DNA of 64,000 nucleotides from Malacoraja senta. Lineage: Eukaryota. The position numbers and the translations under genes are program-made. Where the stretch lies: positions 17,360,001 through 17,424,000 of the forward strand of contig CM075979.1 in the NCBI GenBank assembly GCA_038087875.1, given 5' to 3'. Under the pieces are notes generated by a model. The model had not been told where the DNA came from, ran no database searches, and saw only the letters and a list, made by a program, of their open reading frames with translations. Positions within the stretch are counted from its first letter, which is position 1, and the number at the start of each line of letters is the position of its first letter. Shown one piece after another: positions 28,008-59,670 of this stretch.

Positions 28008-30757
28008 TTTTCCCCCCAGGATGGTAGGGGTTACTATTATTATTTTTTCTTTTTCATATTAAAGCATCAGTTTATTACCTAACTAAAGTTATGCCTGAGT
28101 GCTTTAACTTTTCACTCATCCATGGTCAATCCATTCAGTGTGTGACGCCTGGACTCGTATCCGGCGTGAAGTCACAGAGCTTTAAAGTCTTCACGTAGTC
28201 ACTCACGTGACTCCGAAGTAAAATAGTAAGATCAAACGAGAACTTACCCGTTTGATCTTGATTTTATGAGGAGTTACGATGAGCGATTACGTGCCCCCCG
28301 CTCCCTCCCTCATATTATCAAGGTCATCAGGTAGTTCTATTTCTCAATCTTACCATCCTCAGGTCATTTTCTCTTTTCTGTGATTTCACACCGCTGCATA
28401 AAATCAAGATCAAACTTCAAACTGGTAAGTTCTCGTTTAATCTTACTATTTCTGTGCATAATGTGCATTTTCCTTCAGATGAATTTTGCTTCTGACCTGT
28501 CTTACATTTACTCCATGTCAAACTTAGTCTAACTTATATGAGAAAATATTTCCTCCCACTAAATGTTTGAAACACTGATGCCAGTGTCTTCAGTCTCTAC
28601 CATAACTCTGCTCCCTATCCTTACACTCAATTCCTCTCCTAAGTTGGCATTAACCTATTCATGACACATATCCATTTTGTCAGCAAGACTGTGTAGTGAG
28701 ACCAGGCAGGTTGAGCGAAATGATTTTTATTGACAAAACACAAACAAGCTCGTAAAACCGCGTACCTAGTTTAGCTAACGGACACAGCTCCTGTTGATAG
28801 GAGCGCTAATAACTAACTAAAAAGTCCGCGGACGTACCCCCGCGGTCACGTGACTGCCGCCCAATGACGAGGGTTCTGACTTCCCAGCCTCACCACTATG
28901 CCGCTACTGGACCCACCCCCCCCCCCCCCCAACGAAAAGAAAACGAGCAGGAGTCCAAATCAGGCGGTCAGACCGTGTGGAGACAGGAGGACCAGGTAGA
29001 ACAGGCACAACAGGCGTAACCGGCACAACAAGTGCAACCGGCGAAAGCGGGATGGCCAGCGGACGTCCTCTACGATGGGGCTGGGCCACCAACATCGACT
29101 CCAGGTGGGCGGGCTTGAGGCGGGCCACCAAAACGACCTCCTGCCGGCCCCCGACATCCAAAACAAAAGTTGCGACGCCGGGTTGCAACACCCGGAAGGG
29201 ACCCTGCAGAGGAAAACAAATTGGCAGTCCTTGAGTGCAGGCGGAATATAGGATGGAGCAACACCATGGCGAGAGGTCGGAACAGGGGCTAGCCGACCCA
29301 CTTTCTCAGAGGTGCGCCAGCACAGATGAAGGGGGTTCCTGCTGCCAACGAGCCACTGGAAGAAAATCGCCGGGTACCTTCAGCGGGGAGCCGTAAACCA
29401 ACTCAGCAGATGACGTGGCCAAATCCGCCTTAGGGGCCCGTGCGGATCCCCAGCAGCACCCAAGGCAATGCATCCACCCAATCAGGGCCCGTGAGTCGTG
29501 CTTTCAACGAGGACATCAGGTGCTGGTGAAAACGCTCGACCAAGCCGTTGGCCTGCGGATGGTAAGCAGTAGTATGATGCAGCTGAGCGCCGTACAGCTG
29601 GGCCATAGCCGACCACAGGGCAGAGATGAACTGAGCAGCACAGTCCGAAGAGATATCGGCGGGAACTCCAAAACGTGCCACCCATTGGGCCGCGAGAGCC
29701 CGAGCACAAGTCGCGGCAGAGGTGTCAGGGAGCGGGACGGCCTCGGGCCACCGCGTGAAACGGTCCACAATGGTGAGCAGGTGGGTGACACCTAGGGACA
29801 GCGGCAGGGGACCCACCAGGTCGAAGTGAATGTGATGGAACCGGTGCTGAGGGACGGTGAAATCTTGGAGAGGAGCACGTACATGACGCTGGACCGTGGA
29901 CATCTGGCAGGGAATGCAGGCCCTGGCCCCAACCTGCTTGTGGGGGCCATGCCAGACAAACTTGGCCGCCACCAATGCAGTAGTCGCCCAGATGGAAGGA
30001 TGGGCCAGACCGTGGTTAGAGTCAATAATACGCCGTGGCCAAACCGCAGGGACGATGGGCCGCGGCTGCCCGATGTAGACATCACAAAGGACCGTCACGC
30101 CCGAGCAGGACGTCCTCCAACACCAACCCCGAAACAACAGTGCGATAGGGAAGCATCTCGTCCCCATCCCGTTGCGCAGCAGCCAGTCCAGAATAATCAA
30201 TGCCCGGGTTACGGACAGCACGGCATGAACAGCAGGGCGAGATAAGGTGTCAGTGACCTGGTTAAGCTCACCCGCCACGTGCAGGACACTGGTGGTAAAC
30301 TTTGAGATGAACGGCAGATGCCATTGCTGGCGAACGGACCAGGGGTCGGACACCTTCGTGAACGCAAAAGAGAGAGGCTTTTGGTCGGTGAACGCCGTGA
30401 AGGGCCTGCCCTCCAGGAAATACCGGAACTGTCGAACCGCCAAATAGAGGGCCAGGAGCTCGCGGTCAAAAGCACTATAGTTCTGCTCGGGGGGGGGGGG
30501 GGGTGCAGTATGCCCGACGGCAGTATCAGAAGCGTCGACAGTGAGGGCGGTTGGGGAAGCAGCATGGTGGCGTTAGCGAGCGCCTCCTTGGCCCCGTCAA
30601 AAGCGGCCGTGGTCTCCGCGTCCCAAACACGGGAACAAAGGCCGCATGACCCGGGCCGCCGCTGGCACAAAACAGTGAGAGAAGTTGATCATGCCCACGA
30701 ACTCCTGGAGCCCTTTAACGGTGTGCGGCTGGGGAAACTGCCGAATCGCCTCCACCA

Positions 30758-31006
30758 TTTTCTTTTTTTAAATAAAAAATATTTATTCAAACATTAAAAT
30801 AGTATTTACAACACAATAAAACAAAACAGAACCCACCACCATAGCACAAGACAAAACAGATATACCAAGTAAACTACTAAACAACTATATTACAATCCTT
30901 GTCCAGGATACACTCAATCCACCTCGGTGCCCAACGAAAATGCCCCAGGGTGCCCATGGACAACGCGTAGTCCCTCTCCAGTACTACCTGGGCGCGGACG
31001 TAACCC
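30758..31006 (-). mobile_element. L1/Tx1-type LINE 3' fragment inserted in Gypsy pol
   Basis: A-rich tail on the minus strand at 30758-30790. Upstream frame GYVRAQVVLERDYALSMGTLGHFRWAPRW resembles Tx1 ORF2 C-termini. Gypsy RT/RH sequence resumes on both sides. Confidence 0.55.
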
Positions 31007-31607
31007 CGGAAAAAGGGCAGGCAGCTGGCTCAGGCAGAGCATCGCTTCCACCTTGGCGGGGAGGGGATGGTGGTGGCCGTGGAAGGAAATGGAGTCCAGA
31101 CCAAACTGGCATTTGGCGGGGTTAATGACAAGGCCGTGGTCCCTGAGGCGCTAGCACAGCACCCGGAGGGGCACAGTGCTCCTGGAGGGAGCGGCTGGCA
31201 ACCAGAATGTCATCCAGGTATATAAACATGAAGTCCAATCCCCGGCCGACCATGTCCATAAGCCGCTGAAAGGCTTGCGCGGCTTTCTTGAGACCGAACG
31301 GCATCCGCAACCACTCAAACAGGCCAAACGGGGTAATGATGGCAGTCTTGGGCACATCATCGGGGTGGACGGGGATCTGGTGGTACCCGCGCACCAGATC
31401 AACTTTGGAAAATATTTTTGCCCCGTCTAAATAGGCCGTGAAATCCTGGATGTGCGGGACTGGGTAGCGGTCCGCAGTCATGGCATTGTTAAGGCGGCGG
31501 TAGTCCCCGCATGGTCTCCACCCGCAGGACGACTTAGGGACCATATGGAGTGGGGAAGCCCATGGGCTGTCGAGCGCTGCACAATACCCATATCCTCCAT
31601 GCACTGG

Positions 31608-33326
31608 CAGGGCCAGCCTTAAGCGAATTGGACCAATTGCTCCCAATTGGGCCCCGCGCCTAATGGGGCCCCGCGCTAGGCTGGTGGGCAATACACTCTA
31701 TCCCCTCAGCAGGGATCTTAGTAGATGAAATTCCTCACCGACAACACAGCCCCACGGTTAACTCTCAATACTGTCACCCCAGTGATGGAAATAGGGGGTA
31801 CGCAGGGGGACGGCGTTCCCCTACTTTTCAGTTTCCAGCTCGGGTTTAATGAGTACTGCAGAAAGATTGGAGTCGTTTGTCACTTGATTCGACTGAGACA
31901 AAACGATTTGTTAACTACCACTGTTAGCATTTGTTAACAGCCAGTAGTTAACACGTAGTTATACAATGTGTCACCAATACATCGATCTGCATTCCTCAGT
32001 CAATATAATTGTGTTTTGACCAAGTATTAATGACGCCGCGTTCCTTTGAATAAAATTCACAGCAGAATTTCTTAAAACTTACTGTCATTAAGGGTTCAGG
32101 ACCGCGAGCACAGGCTTCTTCTGTGCAGGTACAGTCATTCACCCATGTTATTTTAAGAAGGAACTGCAAATTCTGGTTGGTACAAGGAGACTACAAAGCT
32201 CGTAATATCTATTTTTTTACACACTGTAACTTTCTACATTTCTACTTTTGGGTATGTATGTGGCAATTATGGCTCATGGAATTTTCTCCCACACTACTAG
32301 TTATATTCGTAACAACATATTTAAATACGTGAAATTTTCGATCTTTCCCAACCCCTTAAAAATGGCCTGAAGAAGGGACCCGACCCTAAACGTCGCCTAG
32401 CCATTCCTTCCTTAGATAGGCACAAAATGCTGGAGTAACTCAGCGGGTCAGGCAGCATCTCTGGAGAGAAGGAATAGGTGACCTTTTGGGTCGAGACCCT
32501 TCTTCGGACCCTCCATAGATCCAGCCTGACCTGCTGAGTTCTCCAGCACTTTATGTTTTGCTCTTAAAATAAATCCATGGTGCGTTGAAGAAACAACACG
32601 ATAGACCTCTCTGGAAGTGCAAGTTTTGCTGTACACTTCATACTGTAGAACACATCATAATAAACCTTGAGTGAATTATGGAGTTAGATTATTTTTTTTA
32701 ATCTGGTGTCTAGAATTAATCGATACCCACCGTATGTACCTTATATCAGATTTAAATCGGATTTCCGATTTTTTTGTTTTCTTATTTGTCAATTTTTTGT
32801 GCCCGATAATTTGGCGGCCAATCAACCGCTGTCTCTAAGGGGGTTGCGTCTAATCACCAACCAGCTTCCCTTAAAATTCCCGTCCAATCAACAAATCGCT
32901 CTCCTCCCGTCCAATCAGCCTCTGTCTGCAAGGGCATTGTGTCAAATCACATAATGCGCTGGTCACTTGGCGGCCAATCAGACACCCTCCAAGGGGCGTT
33001 GTGACCAATCACCGACCAGCTTCTTTTAAAATTCCAGTCCAATCAACAAACCAGTCTCCTCCTGTCCAATCAGCCGCTGTCTCCAAGGCCATTGTGTCCA
33101 ATCACATAATGCAGTTTGATGGTAATTAGCAGCTACGATATAGGTTGGAAGCCAGCGGAGGTACTGACAGTCAGACTCTCCAGTCAGAGCAGGAGAGATT
33201 AAGACAGTGTATGATCCATAGCACCTCAGTGTACATTTTCATAATATATACTAAATAACAGGGCTGACAGACCTTGGCTGGGAACCTGGGGCTCACCAAA
33301 ATTGTTCCCTCCTAAGGCCGGCCCTG
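31608..33326. mobile_element. Non-autonomous hAT-type DNA transposon (1719 bp)
   Basis: TIR CAGGGCCAGCCTTA / TAAGGCCGGCCCTG. 8-bp TSD TGCACTGG (31600-31607) / TGCGCTGG (33327-33334). Removing it restores Gypsy KEGFQRMEDMGIV. Confidence 0.85.
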
Positions 33327-41846: not shown

Positions 41847-44800
41847 TGTAACGGGGATAGCTTGGACCCGATAGCAGCACAGAATCAGGCAGGTATAGTT
41901 GGTACTGAACTTTATTCCAATACTGGAACACAGGAATGGGTACATCGTACTCACACAGAGACTCAGGATTGAGCGAGGGTTCCGAAGAGGGTCTGGCAGG
42001 TTCGAATCCTTGTAGGCAGTCGGGAAATCGCTGGAGAGTCTTGCATGAATGCTGAGAACAATCTGGCACTGTGGGAACGGTGAGGAGAGTCTATATACCG
42101 GATTAATTGGTGATCAGAGGCAACTGAGTGCCACAGGTGAGGAGAGTTGGGCTGATGAGAGGGGAGTGGCAGGCAGGCAGAAGAGGGCAGACTGTGACAG
42201 AACCCCCCCCTCAAGGGACGGCTCCTGACGTCCCAAAACAAAAGGAAAAAAAAACCACAATAAAGAAAATAAACCCAATCCCACGCAGAGTTGGGTGGGA
42301 GGAGGGGGACCGGAGGAGGGCTAATATTCGTCCGAGACATCCATGTCAGCATCCTCCTCCATAGCATCAGAGGAAAGCTCCGTATCGTCGTCACTGGGCG
42401 CCTCAGACGGAAGAGGGGACAGAGTCTCAGGGGCGGCGACCCCTCTAGGATTGGCGGACTTGGACGGCTGGTCGGGATGACGCCTGTGAAACTCCCTGAT
42501 GAGGGAGGCGTCCAGGATGTGTCGAGCAGGAACCCAGGACCTCTCCTCTGGACCGTAACCCTCACAATCGACCAGGTATTGGAGACACCTCCCGCGACGG
42601 CGGGAGCGCAGGAGGCAGTGCACCGTAAAGGCGAGGCCTCCGTTGATGAGACGAGGAGGTGGAGGAGGAGGGACTGCGGGGACCAGGGAGCTCTCCCGGA
42701 CTGGCTTTACTCTGGACACGTGGAACGTAGGATGGACCCGCATGGAACGAGGCAACTTGAGCCGCACAGCCACTGGGTTGATGACCTTCTGGATCTCAAA
42801 GGGACCGATGAACTTGGGTGCCAACTTCTTGGACTCCACCCTCAAGGGAAGGTCCCGGGTCGACAGCCACAACCTCTGGCCCGCGAGGTAGGTGGGGGCC
42901 TGGGTGCGGTGACGGTTGGCAGTCGTGGCGTAACAGGCCACGGAGCGGAGAAGAGACGCCCTAGCTTGGGTCCACGTCCCGTGGCAGCGACGAATGAAGG
43001 CCTGGACGGACGGGCAGGAAACCTCTTTCTCCAGCGCTGGGAACAGTGGAGGCTGGAACCCGTAGGCACACTGGAAAGGGGAGAGCCCAGTGGCTGAGCT
43101 TGTCAGGGTGTTGTGGGCGTACTCCACCCACAACAACTGCTGGGACCAGGAGGAGGGATGCTTAGACACCATACACCGCAGCGCCGTCTCCATCTCCTGA
43201 TTCTTCCTTTCAGTTTGGCCGTTGGACTGGGGATGAAATCCGGACGTCAGACTCACGGTGGCCCCCACAAGCGTGCAGAACTCCCTCCAGAACACAGAGG
43301 CAAACTGGGGTCCTCAGTCGGAGACCACATCGACGGGGAGACCATGGAGCCTGAAGACGTGGAGTAACATGAGCTCGGCAGTTTCCTTGGCTGACGGAAG
43401 CTTGGGCAGGGGCACGGAGTGAGCCATCTTGCTAAATCTATCGACCAAGGTCAGGATGGTGGTGTGACCCCTGGATGGGGGCAGGCCGGTAACGAAGTCC
43501 AGGGAGATGTGGGACCATGGTCGATGGGGTACAGGCAGTGGAAGCAGATGACCCGCAGAGCTTGGTGTGAGACCTTGTGCTGGTTGCAAACGGGACATGC
43601 GTTGACAAACTCCCGAGTGTCCTCCTCCAGCGATGCCCACCAGAACCTCCGTAGCACCATCTCCTTGGTCCGCTGAATGCCGGGATGACAGGCGAGTCGA
43701 GAGCTGTGGGCCCACTGAAGGACGTCGGACCGCAGGGCAGAAACCACAAACAGGCGATAAGGAGGGCATGCGCTGGGTCCCGGCTGCTTCTCCAAGGCCG
43801 CCTTGACCCTCCCTCTCCTCCACCTCCCAGGTGAGGGAGGCAACCCTGTGCGAGGACGAGAGGATGGTCTTGGGGCCCGAGGCAGACTCCTCCTTCGCCA
43901 AGAACTTTCGAGAGAGGGCATCGGGCTTCACGTTGCGGGTCCCAGGTCGGTAGGAGAGGGAGTCAAGGCGACCCCTAGGAGGAGCGGAACCAGGCAGGAG
44001 GTCTATGGCGCAGTCATAGGGCCGATGAGGAGGAAGGGAGGTGGCCCTAGACTTGCTAAAAACCTCCCCAAAGTCATGGTACTCGGCTGGGACCCCCGTC
44101 AGATCCGGAGCAGCACTGGAGCAGGTGGCCAGTTGAGGAGCTGAGGCTTGCTTCAGGCACACTTGGTGGCAGGAAGGGCTCCACCCCAAGACGACCCCCC
44201 TCCTCCAGTCGATGTTGGGGTTGTGTCGCCGAAGCCAGGGGTAACCCAGGATGAGGGGAAAACGGGGAGACTGCAGGATGTGGAACTGGATGGTCTCATG
44301 GTGATTACCAGACAGGAGCATGCGCACTGGGACCGTCCGGTGAGAAACAGTCCCCAGGCGATGGCCGTCGAGGGCGTCGGCGGGAACAGGTTCAGGCAGG
44401 GGAACACAACTGATGCCTAGCTGGCGGGCTAGTTCCTGGTCCATAAGATTAATGTCACAACTAGTCTATGAAGGTGGCGAGGGTGTGAGGACCATCAGAC
44501 AACAGCAGACGGGCATGACAAAGAGGGCATCGGGCAGAGGTAAGTTCAGAGCTTCGACATTCCCGTTCCTCGGGGGTGAGACTGGTGCGACCCACCTGCA
44601 TGGGTTCGGGTTGCCTCGACGGTTGCCCCGACGAGGGTAGTCCAGTCTCCGGAGGAAAACGAGCTGGGGTGGAAAGCTGGCGGTCCGCCGGTCCCTGTCG
44701 CCTCTCGCGGCGTCTCGCCAGGATGCGTTGGTCCAGACGGGTCGTTAGCTCGATAAGCCCATCCAGAGAAGAAGGAAGGTCGTGGGACACCAACTCATCC

Positions 44801-45835
44801 TTGATATAGTCATTCAAGCCCAGCAAGAAAGCGTCACACTGGGCCGGGGCGTTCCAAGCACTCTCCCGGGCCCTGGTGCGAAAGTCGATGGCAAAGTCAT
44901 CAACGCTCTGGTTCACCTGGCTCAACCCCAGCAGACCTCCCGCAGCGTCCGGACCCATCGAAACCTTACCGAACACCTTGCGAAGCTCCGCGGCGAAGGC
45001 CTGGAAAGAGGAGCAAGCCGGCGTGCGTCACTCCCATTCAGCCGTTCCCCACAGCCGAGCTCTGCCAGTCAGGTGATTAATGGTAAACGCCACTCTCGCC
45101 GCTTCCTGGGCGAAGGTGTAGGGCTGTAGGGCGAAGAAAATGGAACAGTTCGTGATGAATGGGTTGCAGCCCTCCGGGTCTTCAGCGTAACGCTCCGGGG
45201 TTCCCACCCGGGGCTCAGGTGATGTTCCTGGCGGACCGGGAGCTGGTGCTGTCGGAGCCGGAGGCGAAGCATGGGATGTAGCCTGGGCGAGGGTGGTCGT
45301 CAGCTGTTGGACCTGGGTGACTAGTGCAACCAATGCTTGTTCTTGGTTTGACACAACCTGTCGAATCTCGGAGTTGGAGGCAGTGAGCATAGCTTCGTGC
45401 TGCCGGAGCGTGTGCTCAATCCTCCCGAAGCGGTTTGCCGGAGACGTAGTGTGCGCCGAGTCCATTGTTGGCCAGATTGTACTGTAACGGGGATAGCTTG
45501 GACCCGATAGCAGCACAGAATCAGGCAGGTATAGTTGGTACTGAACTTTATTCCGATACTGGAACACAGGAATGGGTACATCGTACTCACACAGAGACTC
45601 AGGATTGAGCGAGGGTTCCGAAGAGGGGCTGGCAGGTTCGAATCCTTGTAGGCAGTCGGGAAATCGCTGGAGAGTCTTGCATGAATGCTGAGAACAATCT
45701 GGCACTGTGGGAATGGTGAGGATAGTCTATATACCGGATTAATTGGTGATCAGAGGCAACTGAGTGCCACAGGTGAGGAGAGTTGGGCTGATGAGAGGGG
45801 AGTGGCAGGCAGGCAGGAGAGGGCAGACTGTGACA
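41847..45835 (-). mobile_element. Sushi/chromovirus-type Gypsy LTR element lacking RT and RNase H
   Basis: 353-bp TG..CA LTRs 41847-42199 and 45483-45835; TSD ACTAA; PPT next to 42200. Gag from ATG 45465 (PERYAEDPEGC, HLTGRARLW), protease remnant (LILGYPWLRRHNP), integrase ([19 protein letters not shown]), chromodomain ([18 protein letters not shown]). Confidence 0.93.
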
Positions 45836-46970: not shown

Positions 46971-49211
46971 AGTCTGAGCCTGCGTAATCTCTCCCTATGG
47001 CTAAGGCCCTTAAGTTCTGGCAACATCCTTATGAATCTTCTCTATGATCGTTCCTGCTTAACATGGCCCTTCCTATAGCACGGTGACCAGAAATGAATAC
47101 AATACTCCAAATGTGGCCTCAACAATGTTTTGTACAAAGGTAACATAACATCCAAATTTCTATACTCAATACCTTGACCGATGAAAGCTCATGTAGCAAA
47201 AGTCTTCTTGACCACCCTATCTATCTATGAAGCCACTCTCAAGTAATTATGTACCTGCAATCCTAAATCCCCCTGCTTCACAACACCCCACAGCCATAAT
47301 TATATTCCTTCATGCCAATTCTGATTAAAGGTCCCTAATCTGAACTGGTAAATATTTTCCTCGTTCACAAATGCTACCTGACTTATTGAATATTTTCACA
47401 ATATTCTGTTTTATTCCATAATTTGTCCTGATTTCCATTGTTCAGGTTTACTCTGTTGTTGGCTTTCCTCACAAAATTGCCAACTAAAGAGCAACCATTT
47501 GTGACCATTTATCAGCTTTAAGTAGCAGTTTTGTTTACTTTCTGAGGGAATTGGCTCCTTAGTAATTTTGCTAAGTAAACATGCGATTAAGTGAAAAGAT
47601 GATTGATTCATTTGCGTTATATATTGGATCAACAAACAAGTTGTTGAAGGAACTCAGCAGCATCTGTGGGGTGATATTCATATCTACACTCCCCCCCCCC
47701 CCCCCCCAACAATTGCTGCTCAAACATTGAGTTCCTCCAGCAGATTACTACATGTTCCAGATGCCCACATTTGTAGTCTTATATTGTCTCCATTTTAATT
47801 GAGCTGTTGTGAATAGGGTGACTATTTCAATGTCTTGTTCCCCCATTTATAATCCTGATTGATACAATATTAATTACATTCTGCTTTCCTTTTTATAATG
47901 ATGAGTAGCAATTTTCAACCATAGTTTTAATGAATCACAAATGCTAAAAACATAAATTATATACAACCCGACACAAATTTATTCTATTTGGCTGTGATTG
48001 TGTTTTCATAAATCGAAATCTGCACGCAACTCCTTAAGTTAACAACATTACTTAAATTGATGCAAAAAAATAAACAATTAACAGAAGTTAAGGTTACAGG
48101 TAAAATTATAGAAGTATATGAGTAAAGTTGAAAAATAAAATAAAAACATATTAAAGCCCATTTGTTCCCTGACTAGGGGATAGAACATGATTGTAGTGTT
48201 AGTTGTAAATAATTCCACATATAGCAGGAACATTGAAAATAAGCATAAATACATTTTCAAAATAATTAAGTATTGCATGTATATGCCATGCTGAGTTATT
48301 TTTCAAGATAGCATTATGGCAAGAAAATCTGCATGTGCTTAAACAGCTGTTCCAATGCAGTGTGCCACAAAGTTTTGCAATGTGGGTCCAAACACACAAC
48401 TTCCATAATTGCTGAATTACTGTCAGAAAGGGCAATCAGTCCACACACTTGAAAGAAGGAAATGTGAAATTCACGTCATATTGTGAATGTTGATTCCTAA
48501 AAATGGTTTCTCTACTTTTGAGGCACCAAATGAGTATTAAATATATCATGGAAGTTAACAGGTAGAAACAAGGAACTGCAGATGCTGGTTTATATAAAGG
48601 ACAAAAAGTGGTGGAGTAACTCAGCGGTCAGGCAGCATCTCTGGAGAGCATGGATAGGTACGTTTCGGGTCAGGACCCTTCATGCCTTTTAAATCTTATT
48701 TCAATTCTACCTTTGGAAGTTAATAATTAAAAATACTACTTTAAATCAGTCTGAAGAAGGGTCCTGAACTAAAACTCCACCCATCTATGTTCTCCAGATA
48801 TGTTGCTTGACCCGGTGAGTTACTCCAGCACTTTGTCTTCTGGAAGTTAATAACGCCAGCTAGTATTTGTAATCACCAAAATGCATAAACCTCAATGCAA
48901 CTATTGATACTGAAGATATATAATTGATACTGAAGAATATAATTGATGAGTTAGTTTCTTCGTTAAAAAAAAATCTTCTTACAGTGATATGGTTTCTACC
49001 CTTGGATGCCAACAATGAAAAGTACTATTCTAAATCACGATTACAAATACCATTTGTCAGAAAAGGCAATTATTTTTATTTAGATTGTGTCCATTTGAAA
49101 TTCCAGCTTTATTATGAAGAAATTAAAGCCAACAAAATGCCAGAGCAGAAGTATGGTATCATGTGTCAATCATAATTTCTCTGATTGGGTGGAGAATAAT
49201 CAGAATATTTT

Positions 49212-51548
49212 TTACAAAGCTGATTCATATTCAATAACCCTTGGCATTGCTGATTTAATATTGGTCCTTTGATCGGAAATATTCTCGTCTCTCTCTTCAG
49301 GGCCAAAGGCTTCATTTGTACTGTTACTTGCATCCGTTTTAATTTCAATATCCTCACATTGGCTTAGCATTTCACCATCCGTCTCAAGAATACATTTGGA
49401 TCCTTGTGCACTCTGGTTTCTCTCAGCTGCTTGTTGTAGGGAAAATAGTACAGCATCATGGATACTGCTGAAAGTGCAGCTTTGGCTTGTTGCTTTGAAA
49501 TAACCCATTTGTTGTATAGTTTTTAAAACTCCACTTGAACAACCAGCAAGAACAAAGCTGATGCCAACACCTTGATATTTCTTAAATAGATGAATTAAAG
49601 CATTAGCCCCTTCATCATCCACAAAGCTGACAGACCCACAATCCAAAATAACAGTGTGAACGACTGCAGTTTGTTTGGATATTTTACGCCTATACAGTAC
49701 AGTATTATTCATTCGCCTCAGAGCATTTTCACCCAATGCAAGAAACTGTGTAGATTCCATTAACATATGATATTTATCCTCCTCACTGTATAATTTATTA
49801 TCACTTCCTGAATTTCTACGAGGGTAACAATTTACTTTAACTTTCACCCTGGACAATAAATAATCAACATTCCCATAATATATAGAATGAAATATTTTTA
49901 TAATTTTAATCCCAACTATTTCTTTGGCAGTTTTCTCCAAAGACAAGTCTATATAGTTTTCGGTATTGGGAATATGACCTAAAATGGCAATAGAAGGCCT
50001 TTGAAGTCTGTGTAGAGTCAGCAAAATAGAAAAAATTATGCCCACACCTAAACCAATATCTATGTCTAAGAGACACACAGCCAAAAACGTTATGATTGCA
50101 ACCAAAAACTCATATTTTCTCTTCTTACATACAAAACAGTATTTCCAGAAGAACTTGAAGTACCATCCCAGATTCACAATTGCAATAGCACTGAGAACTG
50201 CTTTTGGCACCAACGGAAGTAAAGATTTTGCACAAAGCAGAGCTATTAGACTCAGGCCAGCTGCAATCAACCCTGCAGCTTGCGTTTGACCCCAGGCTTT
50301 TTCCTGTACCATAGATTGTTCCCAAACCCCAGATGCAGCAAAGGTACCCAGAAATGACAGCAACAGGTCACAGACTCCCAAAACAATAGTCTCCTGATGT
50401 GAACGATAACTTTGGTTGTGTTTTTTGGAGTTTTCACTCCCTAGCGAAATGTTAACTGCAAAAGTCACAATTGCCATAGCAACAGCATCTGCAGCAACAC
50501 TAGCTATTAACGAGAAAGAAGGAAGAATGGGTTTTGGCAAAGTAAATGGATAATTATTTATGAGGCTGATATTGTATCTCTCCTCTAGTTCCAACCAGAA
50601 TGACAAACAAATGGAAACAGCTATTGCAATAAACTCTACAGGTATAAGATGCCTACTATATGTACAATTTATTACTTTAAAAGGTGCCAGAAATGCCAAT
50701 GTTGTTAAACCCATAATTACTGAAAAAATGTTTACCTTATTAGTATTTACAATTATGTCTTTGGAAGAATAAAAGAGAGATAAAGGACCATGATGAACTG
50801 TCCCATCAATACCAAGCAATATCCTCAGGAAAATGATTAATAAGTGCAAAGCTATTCCAGCTCTGAAGCCAAGCATAACAGGCTTGGAGATGCAAGTTCT
50901 TAGGAAACTGACACAAAAAACTCCCATAAAAATTAAAATAATTCCAGAAACACAAGTGAGAGTAGCCACATGCAGTTCTCTTGAACATTTTGGAGAACAG
51001 TCACTGTCAGAGGCAGGTTCTTGAGCTTCAATATGGCTTGTGCTCTTGGCAATGAGAAGAGCAGTGACTGCAGACATCCCATAAGACAGATGTTGAGTTG
51101 TGCCAAGGAGGCAATATAAGATAGTAGTAACTAAACTTGTGTAGACACCATTAACAGCTGGCTCTCCAGCACAAACAGCGAAAGCAAGGGACAGGGGAAT
51201 CGTGAGTAGACCCACACTAATTCCGGACAGCAGGTCTCCGATAATCCATGTCTTTACTTTATACCTGGGAATCCATTTAAGGAAAGGAAAAGCTCGCCGG
51301 AAATATTTTTTAAAATTATATGTAACTGGTAACGTTAGTTCAGATGCTTTTTTTTCATATTCATACAATTTTTCTGCATAGTGATTATCTATGCGGTGAA
51401 AATAAGGAATGTCACCAGTAAATGAAACTCTATATGGTGTCTTTGCAACAAAAGTATAGTTTCTGTCAGTTCTGACTAGAGGGATGTTTGAACCAGATGG
51501 GTCTGCATTTGTGTCACTGGACCAAAAGGACTCTGAACTTCCCAGCAT
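49212..51548 (-). CDS. SLC26-family anion transporter-like protein (prestin/SLC26A5-A6-like, divergent), 778 aa, intronless CDS
   Basis: Uninterrupted ORF with an in-frame stop upstream of the ATG. FPFLKWIPRY...GDLLSGISVG...LAFA, GTTQHLSYG, QETIVLG, VQE..GQTQ, PKAVLSAIAIVNL. STAS domain (IYYGN, VHTVILDCGSVSFVD, SIHDAVL). AATAAA about 100-140 nt downstream. Confidence 0.92.
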   Translation of the reverse strand: MLGSSESFWSSDTNADPSGSNIPLVRTDRNYTFVAKTPYRVSFTGDIPYFHRIDNHYAEKLYEYEKKASELTLPVTYNFKKYFRRAFPFLKWIPRYKVKTWIIGDLLSGISVGLLTIPLSLAFAVCAGEPAVNGVYTSLVTTILYCLLGTTQHLSYGMSAVTALLIAKSTSHIEAQEPASDSDCSPKCSRELHVATLTCVSGIILIFMGVFCVSFLRTCISKPVMLGFRAGIALHLLIIFLRILLGIDGTVHHGPLSLFYSSKDIIVNTNKVNIFSVIMGLTTLAFLAPFKVINCTYSRHLIPVEFIAIAVSICLSFWLELEERYNISLINNYPFTLPKPILPSFSLIASVAADAVAMAIVTFAVNISLGSENSKKHNQSYRSHQETIVLGVCDLLLSFLGTFAASGVWEQSMVQEKAWGQTQAAGLIAAGLSLIALLCAKSLLPLVPKAVLSAIAIVNLGWYFKFFWKYCFVCKKRKYEFLVAIITFLAVCLLDIDIGLGVGIIFSILLTLHRLQRPSIAILGHIPNTENYIDLSLEKTAKEIVGIKIIKIFHSIYYGNVDYLLSRVKVKVNCYPRRNSGSDNKLYSEEDKYHMLMESTQFLALGENALRRMNNTVLYRRKISKQTAVVHTVILDCGSVSFVDDEGANALIHLFKKYQGVGISFVLAGCSSGVLKTIQQMGYFKATSQSCTFSSIHDAVLFSLQQAAERNQSAQGSKCILETDGEMLSQCEDIEIKTDASNSTNEAFGPEERDENISDQRTNIKSAMPRVIEYESAL

Positions 51549-53725
51549 CTTCTTTAGCTTTATGGTGATCTCTGCCCTTTGTCACATTATGTTCATCTTT
51601 GTGTTCATTGAATATTTCTCACATACGTTTTCATTGTTTCAAATATCTAAAAATAAAATAAAAATACAATTAAATAAATCATACATCTACTTCGTTTTAG
51701 ACCAATTTTGATTTTGAGTTTAGTTTATTGTCACGTGTTCCGAGGTAAAGTGAAAAGCATTTGTTGCATGCTAAACAGTCAGTGGAAAGACAATATATGA
51801 TTACAATCGAGCCATCCACAGTATAGAAGGGAATAACGTGAATAATAATTAGTGCAAGATCAAGTGCAATAAAGTCCGATCAAAGATAGTCTAAATGTTT
51901 CAGCAAATGAATGCTAGTGTTCCTTAACTTCCCAAGATATTAGCTTAGAATTGACATCAACATTGAAATTGGGCAAAGGTATTGAACAATCCCCGCACTG
52001 ATCCAGTCATCCCTCTGGCATGACTTTTATGTAAATGCTCGTCACCATCAGGTGTCACTTCAACAGGTTATCCCCTACCAGGAGGAAATTATTGCTCATC
52101 AGGTGCTGTGTGCTGTACAAAAGGTCTGACAATTTGGAACAAGTAGTTAGGTCAGCATGTGGATAAAAAACAGAAATACATCAAAGATAAATTCCGAGTG
52201 GATGCCAGGGGGTATTATAGATAATATCCGCTTCATGACTGAGATAAATAAGTTAAACTAAGTGCATTCTTTGCCACATGGTTAGACTATTACAATAATG
52301 AATTTACAATTAAAAAATCCAGGGACCTCAAGAAAGTTTATTAATATCTAACACCAGAATAAGTAAAATTAAAGAAATATAACAGATTTTGATTGCTCGT
52401 TTACCTTTTTACAACTTAAAACATTTACACAAAACATTTACAACTTCAAACATTTTTTAAATTACTATAAAAAAATTCTAGCCAATAGTCCATTTCAACA
52501 ACAATTATGCCATTTCTCATAGCACTGGAAGTGGCGAGCGTCATATGAAAATGTTGGTATTTGACTAATGGTGCATAATTCTTGATACAATATTATTTCC
52601 AATTATTTTTGGGCTTGGTCTTTTTCCTTCTATTTGTGTTTTTAGCATAACAGGAGGAGAGATAACAATCATTTGTACAGTGTGAAGCAAAGTCAGGCTG
52701 TGGTCTGTTGGGATTGAGCTGGTGACTGGTTGGCTGGGCTGCCTACAGTTTGGGGTATTTGATGATCGAGAAAAGGGTGCGGAAGATATTTACTAGAATG
52801 GTTCCAGGAATGAGTGATGTCAGGTGCGAAGAAATTCTGGGGATTTTCTCCTTGAAATAAAAGTTGAGAGTCGCTTTAATCAAGCTATAAACGATCATGA
52901 CTTTGTCATAAGGTAAATGGAATAAAGCTGATCTCCTTGGCGGATGGTTTGAGGACCAGAGGCACAGATTCAGTGTTAGGAGAAAAAGGCACAAAGGGAT
53001 GTGAAGACACTAATTTTATGCAGACGGATTACGATCCAAAACTCACTGTATAAAAGAGTGGAAACCGAGACAATAAAGGAAATTAGATGAGCACTTGAGG
53101 GAAAATATTTTGCAGAGATTTGGGCAAAGAGAGGAGGACTGAATAGATTATTGTACAGTAAAAAAAATGATGGGCTGAATGGCGTCCACTGTGCTGCAGC
53201 AATTCAAAGGTTCTAATTACAGCAGGAGCAGGATATTTTAAGGCTGTAAGGGGGGGGAATTCCACCAGAAGTTGGATCAGTTGATCAGAGGAGGCACTGA
53301 GGCAATTATGGGGCAGGGCAATTAGAAGTGAGGAAACATTAACAATTTAGTTCCGTGCTCATTAGGCAACATTGAAAAAGTCATAAAAATAAACCTCCCT
53401 CGATCTCTTCTGGCTGAAATCCTGCTCGCTGCAAGCATTTTATCAGCATATTTGGCAGTGATTTGGTGGCTTCAGCTAAAACAGTGAGTGCATCCAAATG
53501 ATGTCACCATCACGCAATTTTAACAATGTAATCAGGTTTCTGTTTGTTTAAGGATGACATGTATCTAAAAGTAAAAGAATTGTTTAAACGGCATCCAAAA
53601 TAAATGGTTCAAAAGTTCCCCAAAGTTTAGGTTAAATCTCTTGCATGCACCATGTTAAAATCAGCAAAACTACAAATTTCACTTTTAGTCCTGTGAATAA
53701 AAATATTGAATGATTTTGCACTTAC

Positions 53726-53871
53726 CGATTTCCTTGGGCTTCCTTGTACTGTTGTTTTGGTTAATCAGCACAACAGTAGTGGTTGTTGAGAGATTTCAAG
53801 CGACCCTTTGAAGCTCTGCTGTGAAGTCCAAATGTAGTCTCCCAAATAAGGACTAGCATGGTGACCACTCG
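53726..53871 (-). other. Candidate 5' non-coding exon of the SLC26-like gene
   Basis: Acceptor tatttttAG| at 53872, donor TCG|GTAAGT at 53726. A matching acceptor ttatttttAG| lies at 51647, 98 nt upstream of the SLC26 ATG. Confidence 0.45.
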
Positions 53872-54893
53872 CTAAAAATAGACATGCTATATGGTAACTC
53901 AATCTATTTGCATGATATTGGTCTTTACAGTTGGGAACCCATTAAAAGTCCACTACCATATTTCTAGTAAGATTTTACCCATTGCTCAAGGAGATAAAAT
54001 TAATATAATTTAGATGTACAAAATTACACAATTTATCTGTTTATCATGTTTGTTTTTTTAACAGTTTAATTACATTCAATGTGTGATTATTTACTGCATT
54101 AAGCATTCTGCTTTATGAATCATTTAATTTCAAATGAACAACAACATTCTTTAACAAAACACCACATTGAAATTAAATACTTTTTTTCAGTCTGAAGAAG
54201 GGTCTCGACCCGAATCGTCACCTAGCAATGTTCTCCACGGATGCTGCCTGACCCACTCAGTTAGTCCGACATGTTGCATCTGTTTTTGCAAACCAGCATC
54301 GGCAGCTCCTTGTTTCTACTGTGTTTTTGTTCCTCATTGACTGTTACATTTTTAACAGCTAATTTCTGATGAGCACTGGGTTAATTTCCCTATTTCTTGC
54401 ACACTGGCAGCAACCCTGTTAAAGTATCCCCTAAGTTGCCAATAGCTCAGTACTACCAGTCATCAGACATAAGTACTGGACAACTTCTGCTCCATTTCTA
54501 ACTCCAGCTATAGCACATCTGAGGTGCTAATTGGAAGCTGCTGATTCTCCCGGGGCAGAAATATAGAAGTAAGAGTCACCCTGGCTGTACCGTCTCAGTG
54601 ACTCCTCTTTGAAGTTAGTAACTAGATCTGTTTGTGCCTATGGCTCTTTACAGCTGGGAATCCCATCAATTATCCATTGCAAAGTTCCACCGCAGCAAAT
54701 TACATTGCTCACAGAGATAAACTGAATAATGTACTGGATCTAATAATTTATTTTAAAGTACATAATGTAACCTGGTTCTACTTGTTATTTTCCTCTTCTG
54801 TTCCATTGCACTTGACCGATCTCAATGTTCTTTCTGTCCTCTCTGAGCTTGCATCTTTACTGTTTTTCCCCCCTATTTCACACATTCCCTCTT

Positions 54894-57800
54894 ATAGAAA
54901 CATAGAAATTAGGTGCAGGAGTAGGCCATTCGGCCCTTCGAGCCTGCACCGCCATTCAATATGATCATGGCTGATCATCCAACTCAGTATCCCGTACCTG
55001 CCTTCTCTCCATACCCTCTGATCCCTTTAGCCACAAGGGCCACATCTAGCTCCCTCTTAAATATAGCCAATGAACTGGCCTCGACTACCCTCTGTGGCAG
55101 AGAGTTCCAGAGATTCACCACTCTCTGTGTGAAAAAAGTTCTTCTCATCTCGGTTTTAAAGGATTTCCCCCTTATCCTTAAGCTGTGACCCCTTGTCCTG
55201 GACTTCCCCAACATCGGGAGCAATCTTCCTGCATCTAGCCTGTCCAACCCCTTAAGAATTTTGTAAGTTTCTATAAGATCCCCTCTCAATCTCCTAAATT
55301 CTAGAGAGTATAAACCAAGTCTATCCAGTCTTTCTTCATAAGACAGTCCTGACATCCCAGGAATCAGTCTGGTGAACCTTCTCTGCACTCCCTCTATGGC
55401 AATAATGTCCTTCCTCAGATTTGGAGACCAAAACTGTACACAATACTCCAGGTGTGGTCTCACCAAGACCCTGTACAACTGCAGTAGAACCTCCCTGCTC
55501 CTATACTCAAATCCTTTTGCTATGAAAGCTAACATACCATTCGCTTTCTTCACTGCCTGCTGCACCTGCATGCCTACTTTCAATGACTGGTGTACCATGA
55601 CACCCAGGTCTCGCTGCATCTCCCCTTTTCCTAGTCGGCCACCATTTAGAAAATAGTCTGCTTTCCTGTTTTTGCCACCAAAATGGATAACCTCACATTT
55701 ATCCACATTATACTGCATCTGCCAAACATTTGCCCACTCACCCAGCCTATCCAAGTCACCTTGCAGTCTCCTAGCATCCTCCTCACAGCTAACACTGCCC
55801 CCCAGCTTAGTGTCATCCGCAAACTTGGAGATATTGCCTTCAATTCCCTCATCCAGGTCATTAATATATATTGTAAATAGCTGGGGTCCCAGCACCGAGC
55901 CTTGCGGTACCCCACTAGTCACTGCCTGCCATTGTGAAAAGGACCCGTTTACTCCTACTCTTTGCTTCCTGTTAGCCAGCCAGTTCTCTATCCACATCAA
56001 TACTGAACCCCCAATGCCATGTGCTTTAAGTTTGTATACTAATCTCTTATGTGGGACCTTGTCGAAAGCCTTCTGGAAGTCCAGATACACCACATCCACT
56101 GGTTCTCCCCTATCCACGCTACTAGTTACATCCTCGAAAAATTCTATAAGATTCGTCAGACATGATTTACCTTTCGTAAATCCATGCTGACTTTGTCCAA
56201 TGATTTCACCACTTTCCAAATGTGCTGCTATCCCATCTTTAATAACTGACTCTAGGAGTTTCCCCACTACCGATGTTAGACTAACTGGTCTGTAATTCCC
56301 CGTTTTCTCTCTCCCTCCCTTCTTAAAAAGTGGGGTTACGTTTGCTACCCGCCAATCCTCAGGAACTACTCCAGAATCTAAAGAATTTTGAAAGATTATT
56401 ACTAATGCATCCACTATTTCTGGAGCTACTTCCTTAAGTACTCTGGGATGCAGCCTATCTGGCCCAGGGGATTTATCGGCCTTTAATCCATTCAATTTAC
56501 CCAAAACCACTTCCCGACTAACCTGGATTTCACTCAATTCCTCCAACTCCTTTGACCCGCGGTCCCTGCTATTTCCGGCAGATTATTTATGTCTTCCTTA
56601 GTGAAGACGGAACCAAAGTAGTTATTCAATTGGTCCGCCATATCCTTGTTCCCCATGATCAACTCACCTGTTTCTGACTGCAAGGGACTACATTTGTTTT
56701 AACTATCTCTTTCTTTTTACATATTTATAAAAACTTTTGCAGTCAGTTTTTATGTTCCCTGCCAGTTTTCTTTCATAATCTATTTTTCCTTTCCTAATTA
56801 AGCCCTTTGTCCTCCTCTGCTGGTCTCTGAATTTCTCCCAGTCCTCTGGTATGCTGCTTTTTCTGGCTAATTTGTACGCATCATCTTTCGCTTTGATACC
56901 ATCCCTGATTTCCCTTGTTATCCACGGATGCACTACCTTCCCTGATTTATTCTTTTGCCAAACTGGGATGAACAATTTTTGTAGTTCATCCATGCAGTCT
57001 TTAATGTCTTCCATTGTATGTCCACCGTCAACCCTTTTAGAATTAATTGCCAGTCAATCATGGCCAATTCATGTCTCATACCCTCAAAGTTACCTTTCTT
57101 TAAGTTCAGAACCATTGTTTCTGAATTAACAATGTCACTCTCCATCCTAATGAAGAACTCAACCATATTATGGTCACTCTTGCCCAAGGGGGCACGTACA
57201 ACAAGACTGCTAACTAACCCTTCCTCATTACTCAATATCCAGTCTAAAATAGCCTGCTCTCTCGTTGGTTCCTCTACATGTTGATTTAGATAACTATCCC
57301 GCATACATTCCAAGAAATCCTCTTCCTCAGCACCCCTGCCAATTTGATTCACCCAATCTATATGTAGATTGAAGTCACCCATTATAACTGTTTTGCCTTT
57401 GTCGCACGCATTTCTAATTTCCTGTTTGATGCCATCTCCAACTTCACTACTACTGCTAGGTGGCCTGTACACAACACCCACCAGCGTTTTCTGCCCCTTA
57501 GTGTTTCGCAGCTCTACCCATACCGATTCCACATCCTCCAAGCTAATGTCCTTCCTTTCCACTGCGTTAATCTCCTCTCTAACCAGCAACGCTACCCCAC
57601 CTCCTTTTCCTTTCTCTCTATCCCTCCTGAATATTGAATATCCCTGGATGTTCAGCTCCCAGCCTTGGTCACCCTGGAGCCATGTCTCCGTGATCCCAAC
57701 AATATCATAGTCATTAATAGCTATCTGCACATTCAACTCATCCACCTTATTACGAATGCTCCTTGCATTGAGACACAAAGCCTTCAGGCTTGTTTTTACA

Positions 57801-59670
57801 ACACTCTTACCCCTTATACAATTATGTTGAAAAGTGGCCCTTTTTGATTTTTGCCCTGGTTTTGTCTGTCTTCCACTTTTACTTTTCACCTTGCTACCTA
57901 TTGCTTCTACCCTCATTTTACACTCCTCTGTCTCTACGCTCACACATTTAAGAAACCCTTTCCCTTTAACTCCATCCTCCACTATCCCATTCGACACCCC
58001 ACCCCCCTTATTCAGTTTAAAACCACCCGTGTAGCAGTGGCAAACCTGCCTGCCAGAATGCTGGTCCCACACCTGTTAAGATGCAATCCGTCCCTTTTGT
58101 ACAGTTCCCCCTTACCCCAAAACAGATCCCAGTGATCTAAGAATCTAAATCCCTGCCCCGTGCACCAGTTCCTGAGCCACACGTTCAGGTCCCGTATCTC
58201 CCTGTTCCTGCTCTCGCCAGCACGAGGAACTGGAAGCAAACCGGAGATAACAACCCTGGAGGTCCTGTTTTTCAGCATTTTTCCGAGCTCTCTAAAGTCA
58301 CGCTGCAGAATATTCATCCCCTTCTTTCCGACATCGTTTGTGCCGACATGCACTAGCACTTCCGGATGTTCACCTTCGCCCTTGAGGATTTTCTGCACTC
58401 TGTCCGTGACATCCTGGATCCTGGCACCAGAAGGCAGCACACCATCCTCGCATCCCGTCTGTGCCACAGAAACCCCTGTCCGTACCTCTCACAATGAGTC
58501 TCCCACTACAATGGCGTTGCCTGCCTTAGGCCTTTTTGGTTTTGGCTCAACAGCCCTATTCGCATCGCAAGCCAGTCCGCCGCTCAGTGTAAACACGTCT
58601 TCTGTCCCAACAGCTTCTAAGTGGGTGAACCTGTTCACAAGAGGTACAACACCCGGGGACGTTGGCATTCCATGCTTCCCTCCCTTTCTCACCGTCTCCC
58701 ACCTTCTCTCTTCCAGTACCTTAGGTGTAACAATCGTACTGTAGGACTTGTCGAGGAACGACTCCGTTTCTCGGACGAACCGGAGGTCATCCACTTGCTT
58801 CTCCAGTTCCCCAACACGGCCCTTCAGGAGCTCTACCTGGATGCACTTCTCGCATTTGTAGCAGCCAGAGGCACCAGCGGTGTCCTTGACCTCCCACATA
58901 CTGCAAGCATCGCACTGAACCAGCTTGCCTGACATCTCCTTCTTTTGTCTCTACCTCTCAAGCGTATATGCGTGGTGTCCTCTCCTAAGACTCTCGAGCC
59001 AAAGACTCACACTTCCCTCACAAGGCCGCTCACTCACTGCCGCTCGCTAACAGCCGTCTTGCTTAAATTGCCTGATTTATCACTTTACAAACAAAATTCC
59101 TCAGTTTTCAACTGTTTTCCCAGCACTGACTCACTTCTCTCCTCCCACTCGGGCTAGAGCCAATCAGTCGTATCTCTTGCTAATCTCCTGCTGCTGTTGC
59201 TCCCAAATCTACAGCAGTTCTGAATAAAGTCTGCCTGTGCTTGGCTTCTACTTTTCAACTGTTTTTCCCCCCTCTGACTCACTTCTCTCCTCCCCACTCG
59301 GGCTAGAGCCAATCAATCGTATCTCTTGCTAATCTCCTGCTGCTGTTGCTCCCAAATCTACAGCAGTTTCTGAATAAAGTCTGCCTGTGCTTGGCTTCTA
59401 CTTTTCAACTGTTTTTCCCCCCTCTGACTCACTTCTCTCCTCCCACTCGGGCTAGAGCCAATCAGTCGTATCTCTTGCTAATCTCCTGCTGCTGTTGCTC
59501 CCAAATCTACAGCAGTTCTGAATAAAGTCTGCCTGTGCTTGGCTTCTACTTTTCAACTGTTTTTCCCCCCTCTGACTCACTTCTCTCCTCCCACTCGGGC
59601 TAGAGCCAATCAGTCGTATCTCTTGCTAATCTCCTGCTGCTGTTGCTCCCAAATCTACAGCAGTTCTGAA
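54894..59670 (-). mobile_element. Near-full-length CR1 LINE (5' tandem monomers, ORF1, ORF2, 3' tail) with a few disabling lesions
   Basis: ORF1 58935->58012 (CxxC...CxxC zinc finger, coiled coil, GDSL/SGNH esterase VVGDSL, HVGTND, DGLHLN; frameshift near 58480). ORF2 in pieces 56933..58072 (APE), 56703..57014, 54984..56546 (RT, KFADD). Confidence 0.93.
59105..59670. repeat. About 148-bp tandem monomers (3.8 copies) at the CR1 5' end
   Basis: Units start near 59105, 59252, 59402 and 59550. Each contains TGACTCA and CCAATC. Confidence 0.9.

Follow-up and report, generated by a model that had tools for sequence, protein, structure and literature searches.

In SLC26 proteins the substrate anion is held between the N-termini of transmembrane helices (TM) 3 and 10 (PMC8755724). 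The roles of this bound anion and of the neighbouring arginine in voltage sensing by prestin (SLC26A5) and in exchange are debated in the field, and the key experiments in that debate engineered charges at S396, S398 and R399. In prestin, the S398E substitution kept nonlinear capacitance and abolished block by the competing anion salicylate, and R399E had similar effects (PMC8755724, PMC10699807). The fixed carboxylate of S398E was taken to substitute for the bound anion (PMC8755724, PMC10699807), and voltage dependence has been described as requiring R399 in combination with a negative charge (PMC10699807). Here, we describe a prestin-like SLC26 gene from the skate Malacoraja senta that carries Glu at the S398 position and Gln at the R399 position in its native sequence. 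The gene lies in a 64,000-nucleotide stretch of contig CM075979.1 (GCA_038087875.1, positions 17,360,001 to 17,424,000), which we call the window and within which all positions are given.

This gene and its cartilaginous-fish orthologs are referred to below as clade X, which comprises 12 species including the window skate. The joint explanation that we consider best, with a probability of roughly 0.6, is that clade X is a real, conserved and functional SLC26 paralog, present only in cartilaginous fishes, in which the anion pocket has been rebuilt and canonical anion exchange has probably been lost. Gene models of clade X are already public under the automatic name 'prestin-like', and this name is misleading. 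Literature searches covering SLC26 genes in sharks and elasmobranchs, intronless or retrogene copies, and prestin-like proteins found no paper on the clade, which does not mean that none exists. Clade X is an apparently undescribed, lineage-restricted member of a medically important family and, if that holds, in effect the thirteenth vertebrate SLC26; slc26a12 received its name in 2024 on evidence of a similar kind (PMC11145369).

Gene structure, orthologs and selection

The initial annotation described a 778-codon open reading frame (ORF) without stops that holds the SLC26 transmembrane and STAS domains in one exon. The ORF list and Pfam bear this out, on the minus strand, and all of the scaffold motifs that it quoted are present in the translation of 49212–51548. 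Given the base composition of the region, a stop should occur about once in ∼15 codons, and 778 consecutive open codons would arise by chance with a probability of ∼2e-24. Pfam assigns residues 103–487 to Sulfate_transp (PF00916; 3.9e-66, profile positions 2–380 of 380) and residues 540–699, C-terminal to the membrane domain, to STAS (PF01740; 1e-13). The 778-residue protein contains both the full-length Sulfate_transp domain and the C-terminal STAS domain that the SLC26/SulP family requires.

AlphaFold2, run on an 81-sequence alignment, gave a model with a mean predicted local distance difference test score (pLDDT) of 78 and a predicted template-modelling score (pTM) of 0.76; pLDDT exceeds 90 in most of the membrane domain and of the STAS core. 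Foldseek searches against solved vertebrate SLC26 structures gave template-modelling (TM) scores by target of 0.73–0.85, with prestin first (E 5e-43), and the model contains the 7+7 inverted-repeat fold with short, opposed TM3 and TM10 half-helices. Clade X keeps every part of the SLC26 architecture, with the predicted 14-helix core-and-gate fold, the STAS domain and the PDZ-type C-terminus. MAFFT aligns the C-terminal tail with the TAL, TRL and THL ends of SLC26A9 and SLC26A6, and by its sequence the C-terminus looks like a PDZ-type ligand.

At the N-terminus, residues 1–55 are predicted to be disordered (pLDDT <50), yet they are highly conserved among elasmobranchs. An R-V-S-F sequence at residues 40–43 resembles a protein phosphatase 1 docking motif, its Phe being Tyr in Mobula. 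Most shark gene models, those of Heptranchias and Pristiophorus excepted, extend the frame 13–26 codons upstream to another ATG; in the skate this extension is closed by a TGA 12 codons before the ATG. In the Pristis model the first ∼54 residues are replaced by an unrelated N-terminus, which may be an alternative exon or an annotation artefact.

A word-index protein search returned 11 orthologs with 63–97% identity, all automatically annotated as 'prestin-like'. The closest is that of Amblyraja radiata (97%), followed at 71–84% by those of Mobula, Pristis, Heptranchias, Pristiophorus, Heterodontus, Carcharodon, Mustelus, Chiloscyllium and Scyliorhinus; the ortholog of the chimaera Callorhinchus is 63% identical. 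HMMER was run exhaustively against 1.84 billion representative proteins and found nothing outside the clade above 31–36% identity. The clade's own representative was the sole high scorer, followed by a plateau of SLC26 relatives drawn from many families and phyla, and no characterised SLC26 clade matched either in this search or in the trees described below. The best non-chondrichthyan match was a 1,296-residue STAS-domain protein of Trichuris muris with three matched stretches, which may be a tandem or fused SLC26 model. Within the searched libraries, clade X is restricted to cartilaginous fishes, and it arose before the split between chimaeras and the shark and ray lineage.

The reading frame is intact across the class, in all 12 species, and clade X is under purifying selection. 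Nei-Gojobori estimates of the ratio of non-synonymous to synonymous substitution rates (dN/dS) are 0.22 for the pair of skates and 0.25 for the skate against Heptranchias (dS 0.49), far from the value near 1 that would speak against a functional gene. Every region lies between 0.22 and 0.39, including the N- and C-terminal tails that are predicted to be disordered. A decaying retrocopy whose frame has stayed open by chance has nothing in its favour beyond the AT-rich, transposon-filled surroundings, and the intact frames, the dN/dS of 0.22–0.25, the minute chance probability of so long a frame and the conserved splice sites leave it a negligible prospect.

The coding sequence occupies a single exon in six species: the window skate, Amblyraja, Heptranchias, Mobula, Heterodontus and Carcharodon (in the five relatives, this was judged from a gene span equal to 3 × (residues + 1)). 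The gene as a whole was also called intronless, which is correct for the coding sequence only, for a conserved donor at 53725 and acceptor at 51647 define an intron in the 5′ untranslated region (UTR). The acceptor, TTTTAG|ATATTTG with its AG behind a polypyrimidine tract, lies ∼100 nucleotides upstream of the ATG. The donor, AAATCG|GTAAGT, lies ∼2.1 kb farther upstream, at the end of a block conserved with Heptranchias. Both signals are identical in the skate, Amblyraja and Heptranchias, and the interior of the intron is unconserved.

Four runs from three related organisms supplied Logan contigs, which were placed on positions 47600–53500, a range that ends short of the predicted first exon. 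In all four runs the contigs that cover the ORF stop at 51646 or 51647 and continue with 49–137 letters that do not match the window; where one further base matches, at 51647, it is the terminal G of the predicted first exon. Contig depth is zero over 51934–53500. At the other end, the 3′-most contig pieces of three runs finish at 47912–47916, 10–14 nucleotides past an ATTAAA signal, and the fourth reaches only 48041. A high-copy short repeat within the 5′ UTR intron has a word depth of 10^4–10^5 and forms chimeric joints with the repeats of the 3′ UTR. Because the genomic DNA of Amblyraja and Heptranchias is colinear with the window through the acceptor and the contigs are not, the pattern probably reflects a spliced, polyadenylated skate mRNA. 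Exon-capture DNA was considered as the source of the contigs and is unlikely, since all four runs break at the same acceptor nucleotide and three of the four end just past the ATTAAA. A run search restricted to libraries described as RNA-Seq listed zero runs.

Residues at the anion-binding site

Site residues were paired with prestin positions by HMMER alignment to solved prestin structures; MAFFT gave concordant pairs, and the codons were checked. The HMMER alignment is gap-free near TM10 and has the top posterior probability there, pairing FAASGVWEQSMVQE of clade X with FSISCSLSRSLVQE of prestin. It likewise pairs IPLSLAF with prestin LPQGLAF in TM1 and LSYGMSAV with ISIGPFAV in TM3. In TM1, L119 and S120 correspond to prestin Q97 and G98. 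At the entry to TM3, Y156, M158 and S159 correspond to I134, P136 and F137, and at the entry to TM10, V408, W409, E410 and Q411 correspond to S396, L397, S398 and R399. These pairings reproduce the initial by-eye reading of the site (PLS in TM1, GMSA in TM3, and V, E and Q at S396, S398 and R399). A Ser/Arg pair in TM10 would have contradicted that reading and is not seen, the solved prestin structures aligning with E410 and Q411 at these places.

The substitutions Q97L, I134Y, F137S, S396V, S398E and R399Q (prestin numbering) are invariant in 12 of 12 clade species, and the clade-invariant pocket comprises L119, S120, Y156, S159, V408, E410 and Q411. Position 158 varies among Met, Ala and Thr; at position 409, nine species have Trp and three have Cys. 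In the AlphaFold model the TM3 helix begins at residue 160, behind a short strand at residues 156–157, and S159 is thereby its predicted N-cap; a second short strand, at 406–407, precedes the TM10 helix of residues 409–417, and E410 and Q411 accordingly fall in its first turn.

Among 311 aligned relatives outside the clade, the S398 position is Ser in 240, Asp in one and Glu in none; Gln occupies the Q97 position in 287 (Leu in five), and Arg the R399 position in 252. None of the 311 carries the combination of site states found in clade X. In place of the canonical anion-coordinating residues (prestin Q97, F137, S398 and R399, or conservative equivalents), clade X has L119, S159, E410 and Q411. 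Judged by its sequence, clade X is a clear SLC26 member that fails the substrate-site signature of its family.

We propose that the carboxylate of E410 would sit where the substrate anion normally binds, stabilised by the helix dipoles of TM3 and TM10 and by S159 and Y156. SLC26A9, with Val at the Arg position, shows that an SLC26 anion site can exist without the arginine, which is not needed to hold a negative charge there. Such a site would be permanently self-occupied, and the classical exchange of Cl-, HCO3-, sulfate or oxalate would be lost. The protein could then run through an anion-independent conformational cycle or act as a switch, governed by voltage or by protonation of E410 and read out via the STAS domain and PDZ partners. 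It could also couple transport to H+ or to a cation bound at E410. That E410 fills the anion site and that classical anion exchange has been lost stands, in our estimate, at about even odds.

Several observations weigh against this proposal and against the broader explanation of which it is a part. Position 399 is V, K, T or S in working family members, and with such variability the loss of the arginine proves nothing by itself. The strict invariance of the whole pocket fits a ligand-binding site better than a mere plug, and E410, if protonated, could still permit anion binding. The AlphaFold model informs on backbone placement only. The transcript case, too, is a reading of contig ends, as two of the four runs are flagged 'probably DNA' and the other two 'not shown transcribed'.

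If the pocket does bind a ligand, E410 together with Q411, Y156, S159 and S120 might coordinate H+, Na+ or a different cation, whose charge would take the place of that of the arginine, and the exchanger would have become a cation-coupled symporter or would carry a solute that is neutral or cationic. The Foldseek matches extend to AtSULTR4;1, BicA and UraA, which are coupled to H+ or Na+; UraA does so with a glutamate in TM10. A ligand site would be expected to show the unvarying pocket that the clade has kept throughout its depth, the model places the Glu in the first turn of TM10, and in its PDZ-type tail the protein is similar to A6 and A9, both of them epithelial transporters. However, an aromatic cage is not conserved, given that W409 is Cys in three species, and none of the 311 relatives offers a precedent with an E-Q pair at this place; we regard such a change of coupling or substrate as rather unlikely. 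Still less probable is an ordinary anion exchanger or channel whose site changes only tune its selectivity. In its favour, the fold, STAS domain and PDZ-type tail are intact, and other working members also vary at the arginine position. Yet here four pocket positions have changed together, including the addition of a fixed negative charge at the anion site, where none of the 311 relatives has Glu, and prestin with the same S398E change is insensitive to a competing anion (PMC8755724).

To return to the self-occupied site, its boldest form is a natural 'S398E + R399Q' SLC26 whose site is filled by its own carboxylate and which serves as an anion-free voltage or pH switch, or as a carrier of non-anionic solutes, tied to chondrichthyan physiology. 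We hold this to be a distinctly unlikely possibility. Such a carrier might be coupled to H+ or a cation, and urea or methylamine osmolytes as its solutes mark the speculative extreme. Were it true, an elevator transporter would have been turned into something new. A Glu fixed at the S398 position and an Arg removed beside it, both unchanged across a whole vertebrate class, make clade X a natural and stable test protein for the debate on prestin. It enables back-mutation within clade X and transplantation of its site into prestin or A6.

Phylogenetic placement and origin of the single coding exon

The initial annotation placed the gene closest to A5 and A6, and similarity scores agree. Among solved structures, HMMER ranks prestin best at 331–379 bits, with E-values of 4e-112 for the thermostabilised consensus form and ∼1e-97 for natural human and dolphin prestin, followed by SLC26A6, pendrin, A2, A9 and A3. 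Phylogeny does not sustain this placement. In approximately unbiased (AU) tests, trees that join clade X to A5 (p 0.046) or to A6 (p 0.043) are marginally rejected as direct sisterhoods on these alignments. An identity with prestin itself was discarded: the two are monophyletic in no tree, and a published table on stingray kidney has its own entry for a canonical prestin, 'Prestin isoform X1 [Amblyraja radiata]', besides entries for A1, A2, A6, A9, A10 and A11 (PMC9396271). The same table contains neither the clade X gene nor A8 (PMC9396271). Orthology to A6 was set aside on its marginal AU result.

Elsewhere in the family the trees disagree. FastTree puts clade X on a very long stem as the sister of tetrapod SLC26A8 (support 93), a sisterhood that the mixture-model trees do not recover. 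A first mixture-model tree set it beside the A12/tunicate group with a support of 49/0. An LG+C20 posterior mean site frequency (PMSF) tree of 46 sequences left clade X in a basal polytomy, and one of 48 sequences with better slc26a12 sampling made it sister to the whole A3/A4/A5/A6/A8/A9 group (85/84); the trees were built without true A1 or A2 sequences from cartilaginous fishes. AU tests do not reject union with A8 (p 0.53 and 0.48, the first of these trees being slightly likelier than the free tree), with the A3–A9 group (p 0.50), with A12 (p 0.40) and with A9 (p 0.26, 8 log-likelihood units worse). The clade X stem measures ∼2.1 substitutions per site against a crown depth of 0.2–0.45, and a long stem followed by slow evolution is the sequence pattern expected after a change of function.

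As rough odds, a many-exon parent of A3–A9 type, A8 included, falls a little short of an even chance, a parent from the A1/A2/A12 lineage is almost as likely, and an older independent line is unlikely. The choice governs how the single coding exon arose. Genes of the A3–A9 type have about 20 exons, and from such a parent all coding introns would have been lost at once, which would imply retroposition and make the upstream non-coding exon a recruited promoter exon. In cartilaginous fishes and tetrapods the coding sequence of the A1/A2/A12 genes is divided between two exons at a conserved intron position (PMC12357937). Clade X, with one coding exon in the six species, departs from this layout, and the loss of one intron would suffice to derive it from such a parent. 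The proposal of a retrogene that has stayed open is thus upheld as to its frame, intact in all 12 species, and only in part as to its origin: retroposition is plausible but unproven, and the parent could be a gene with few introns. A reading of the flanks, made without a systematic search, found neither a poly(A) remnant nor target-site duplications, and none would be expected beyond the age of the class. A new locus is consistent with the conserved non-coding exon and intron upstream and with a PTPMT1-like gene as the only non-transposon coding neighbour in the window; PTPMT1 is not known to adjoin any human SLC26 gene.

Derivation from the A1/A2/A12 lineage without any retrocopy would make clade X a highly derived offshoot that was relocated and lost its single coding intron, perhaps even the 'missing' slc26a12 of cartilaginous fishes. 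A CxxxC motif (C184/C188) occurs at the same aligned place in SLC26A12 (C-[EDG]-[KR]-x-C) and in human SLC26A2 (C-D-K-S-C) and in none of the aligned A3–A10 sequences. However, a position scan found two invertebrate relatives with CxxxC in the same loop region, and the motif may therefore be ancestral. Clade X shares four exclusive states with A12, one with A8 and none with A5 or A6, counts that are too small to decide. SLC26A2 has a non-coding first exon, a layout that clade X resembles. The AU test does not reject the union with A12, and the first mixture-model tree favours it, if with negligible support. Against such an origin stand the better-sampled tree, the lack of true cartilaginous-fish A1 and A2 sequences in the trees, and similarity scores that are higher to prestin and A6 than to A2. 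The published survey leaves open a loss of slc26a12 in cartilaginous fishes (PMC12357937). On balance, we consider this derivation possible but doubtful.

A further candidate is SLC26A8 (testis anion transporter 1), of which clade X would be the cartilaginous-fish counterpart, the original gene having been replaced by a retrocopy. An A8-query search listed A8 orthologs from tetrapods only, and the two distributions are thereby complementary. The FastTree sisterhood, the constrained tree that is as likely as the free tree, and K417, which lies right after the VQE motif of TM10 and is common to clade X and all A8 sequences and to no other group, point the same way. Yet of the three longest stems two belong to clade X and A8, which makes long-branch attraction likely, and their pairing is absent from the mixture-model trees. 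A8 also lacks the PDZ-type tail and the CxxxC motif, and its identity to clade X (25–28%) is lower than that of A5 or A6. We judge this history improbable. The tetrapod A8 locus has SRPK1 and MAPK14 as neighbours.

Genomic surroundings and comparison with known systems

The features of the gene and of its surroundings are collected in Table 1. The window consists almost entirely of transposons, with nothing else to the right of the gene, and the flanking DNA is colinear with that of Amblyraja at 94% identity. The sole non-transposon coding neighbour within it is a PTPMT1-like first exon, which has a 20-residue match to mouse PTPMT1 in a PDB search (E 0.003). Its Atlas leads are tyrosine-phosphatase-like and fall below 0.9, and a Pfam search of this exon returned no domain; the remainder of the gene would fall outside the window, past its left end. 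Two copies of one long interspersed nuclear element (LINE) family, which encode an endonuclease and a reverse transcriptase, share long near-identical protein stretches, and this suggests recent activity. One of them lies ∼3.4 kb upstream of the SLC26 start codon. A DIRS-like retroelement and two Ty3/Gypsy-type remnants, which lie in the GC-rich parts of the window, complete the set.

Table 1. Positions of the gene, its functional sites and neighbouring elements in the window
Feature	Positions	Strand	Basis or remark
Non-coding first exon, 3′ part	53726..53900	-	Conserved with Heptranchias and Amblyraja up to the exact donor position
5′ UTR intron, 2,079 nucleotides	51647..53725	-	Conserved splice signals; GT 53725-53724, AG 51648-51647
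High-copy short repeat in 5′ UTR intron	∼51718..51930		Word depth; chimeric joints
5′ untranslated part of coding exon	51549..51646	-	Conserved acceptor; contigs of four runs stop at 51646/51647
Complete coding sequence, single exon, 778 codons + TAA, ATG start	49212..51548	-	ORF list; Pfam; 97% identity to Amblyraja radiata 'prestin-like' protein
N-terminus, residues 1–55	51384..51548	-	Predicted disordered
R-V-S-F, residues 40–43	51420..51431	-	Resembles protein phosphatase 1 docking motif
Transmembrane (Sulfate_transp) domain, residues 103–487	50088..51242	-	Pfam; AlphaFold pLDDT >90 over most; Foldseek TM-score by target 0.73–0.85
TM1 motif P118-L119-S120, replacing P-Q-G	51189..51197	-	HMMER and MAFFT; invariant in 12 species
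TM3 entry Y156-G157-M158-S159, replacing I-G-P-F; S159 predicted TM3 N-cap	51072..51083	-	Alignments; model helix from 160
C184-x-x-x-C188 motif, TM3–TM4 loop, directly N-terminal to TM4	50985..50999	-	Invariant in clade; alignment
TM10 entry V408-W409-E410-Q411, replacing S-L-S-R; E410/Q411 in predicted first helical turn	50316..50327	-	Alignments; model helix 409–417
STAS domain, residues 540–699, with low-confidence intervening loop ∼575–626	49452..49931	-	Pfam; model secondary structure and pLDDT
C-terminal E-S-A-L, end of tail R-[IV]-I-E-Y-E-[ST]-x-L; putative class I PDZ ligand	49215..49226	-	Conserved beyond variable linker
3′ UTR, ∼1.3 kb	47914..49211	-	Contigs of four runs cover most, broken at repeat pair
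High-copy SINE-like (short interspersed nuclear element) repeat pair within 3′ UTR	48565..48836	.	Word depth 10^4–10^5, many chimeric joints; multiple window copies
ATTAAA poly(A) signal	47926..47931	-	Sequence; 10–14 nucleotides before contig ends
PTPMT1-like first exon	1752..1901	-	In ORF 1590–1901
LINE copy	5553..7772	+	Endonuclease and reverse transcriptase
LINE copy	54984..58072	-	Same family
DIRS-like retroelement	25263..28007	+	Reverse transcriptase ORF, then tyrosine-recombinase (Phage_integrase) ORF
Ty3/Gypsy-type remnant	29430..31691	-	Reverse transcriptase, RNase H, integrase core
Ty3/Gypsy-type remnant	42321..45705	-	As above, with additional SH3_Tf2-1 domain and chromodomain

Prestin is the highest-scoring solved relative of clade X and shares its fold, STAS domain and scaffold motifs. 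Engineered prestin S398E has a Glu at exactly the same position, introduced there to mimic the bound anion (PMC8755724). Prestin nonetheless retains R399, Q97 and F137, where clade X has Gln, Leu and Ser, and the coding sequence of clade X is a single exon. The SLC26A1/A2/A12 genes resemble clade X in having few introns and a CxxxC motif before TM4, and slc26a12 is likewise a lineage-restricted member recognised only recently (PMC11145369). They differ in that clade X is only ∼29–32% identical to them, has no coding intron and occupies a different locus, and the TM10 site of SLC26A12 reads A-K in place of E-Q.

SLC26A8 shares K417 with clade X and is similarly fast-evolving and lineage-restricted, with a partly degenerate site (S-T at 398–399 in Anolis A8). 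Unlike clade X, it has no PDZ-type tail, CxxxC motif or site Glu, was seen here only in tetrapods and is a multi-exon gene. SLC26A9 also lacks Arg at 399, yet binds chloride, and its C-terminus ends in T-A-L, similar to the E-[ST]-A-L of clade X; unlike clade X, it keeps Ser398, the TM1 Gln and the TM3 Phe. Finally, BicA, AtSULTR4;1 and UraA have the same 7+7 fold by Foldseek but are distant, at 13–22% identity. Their coupling to H+ or Na+ depends on acidic residues located in or close to the TM8/TM10 substrate site.

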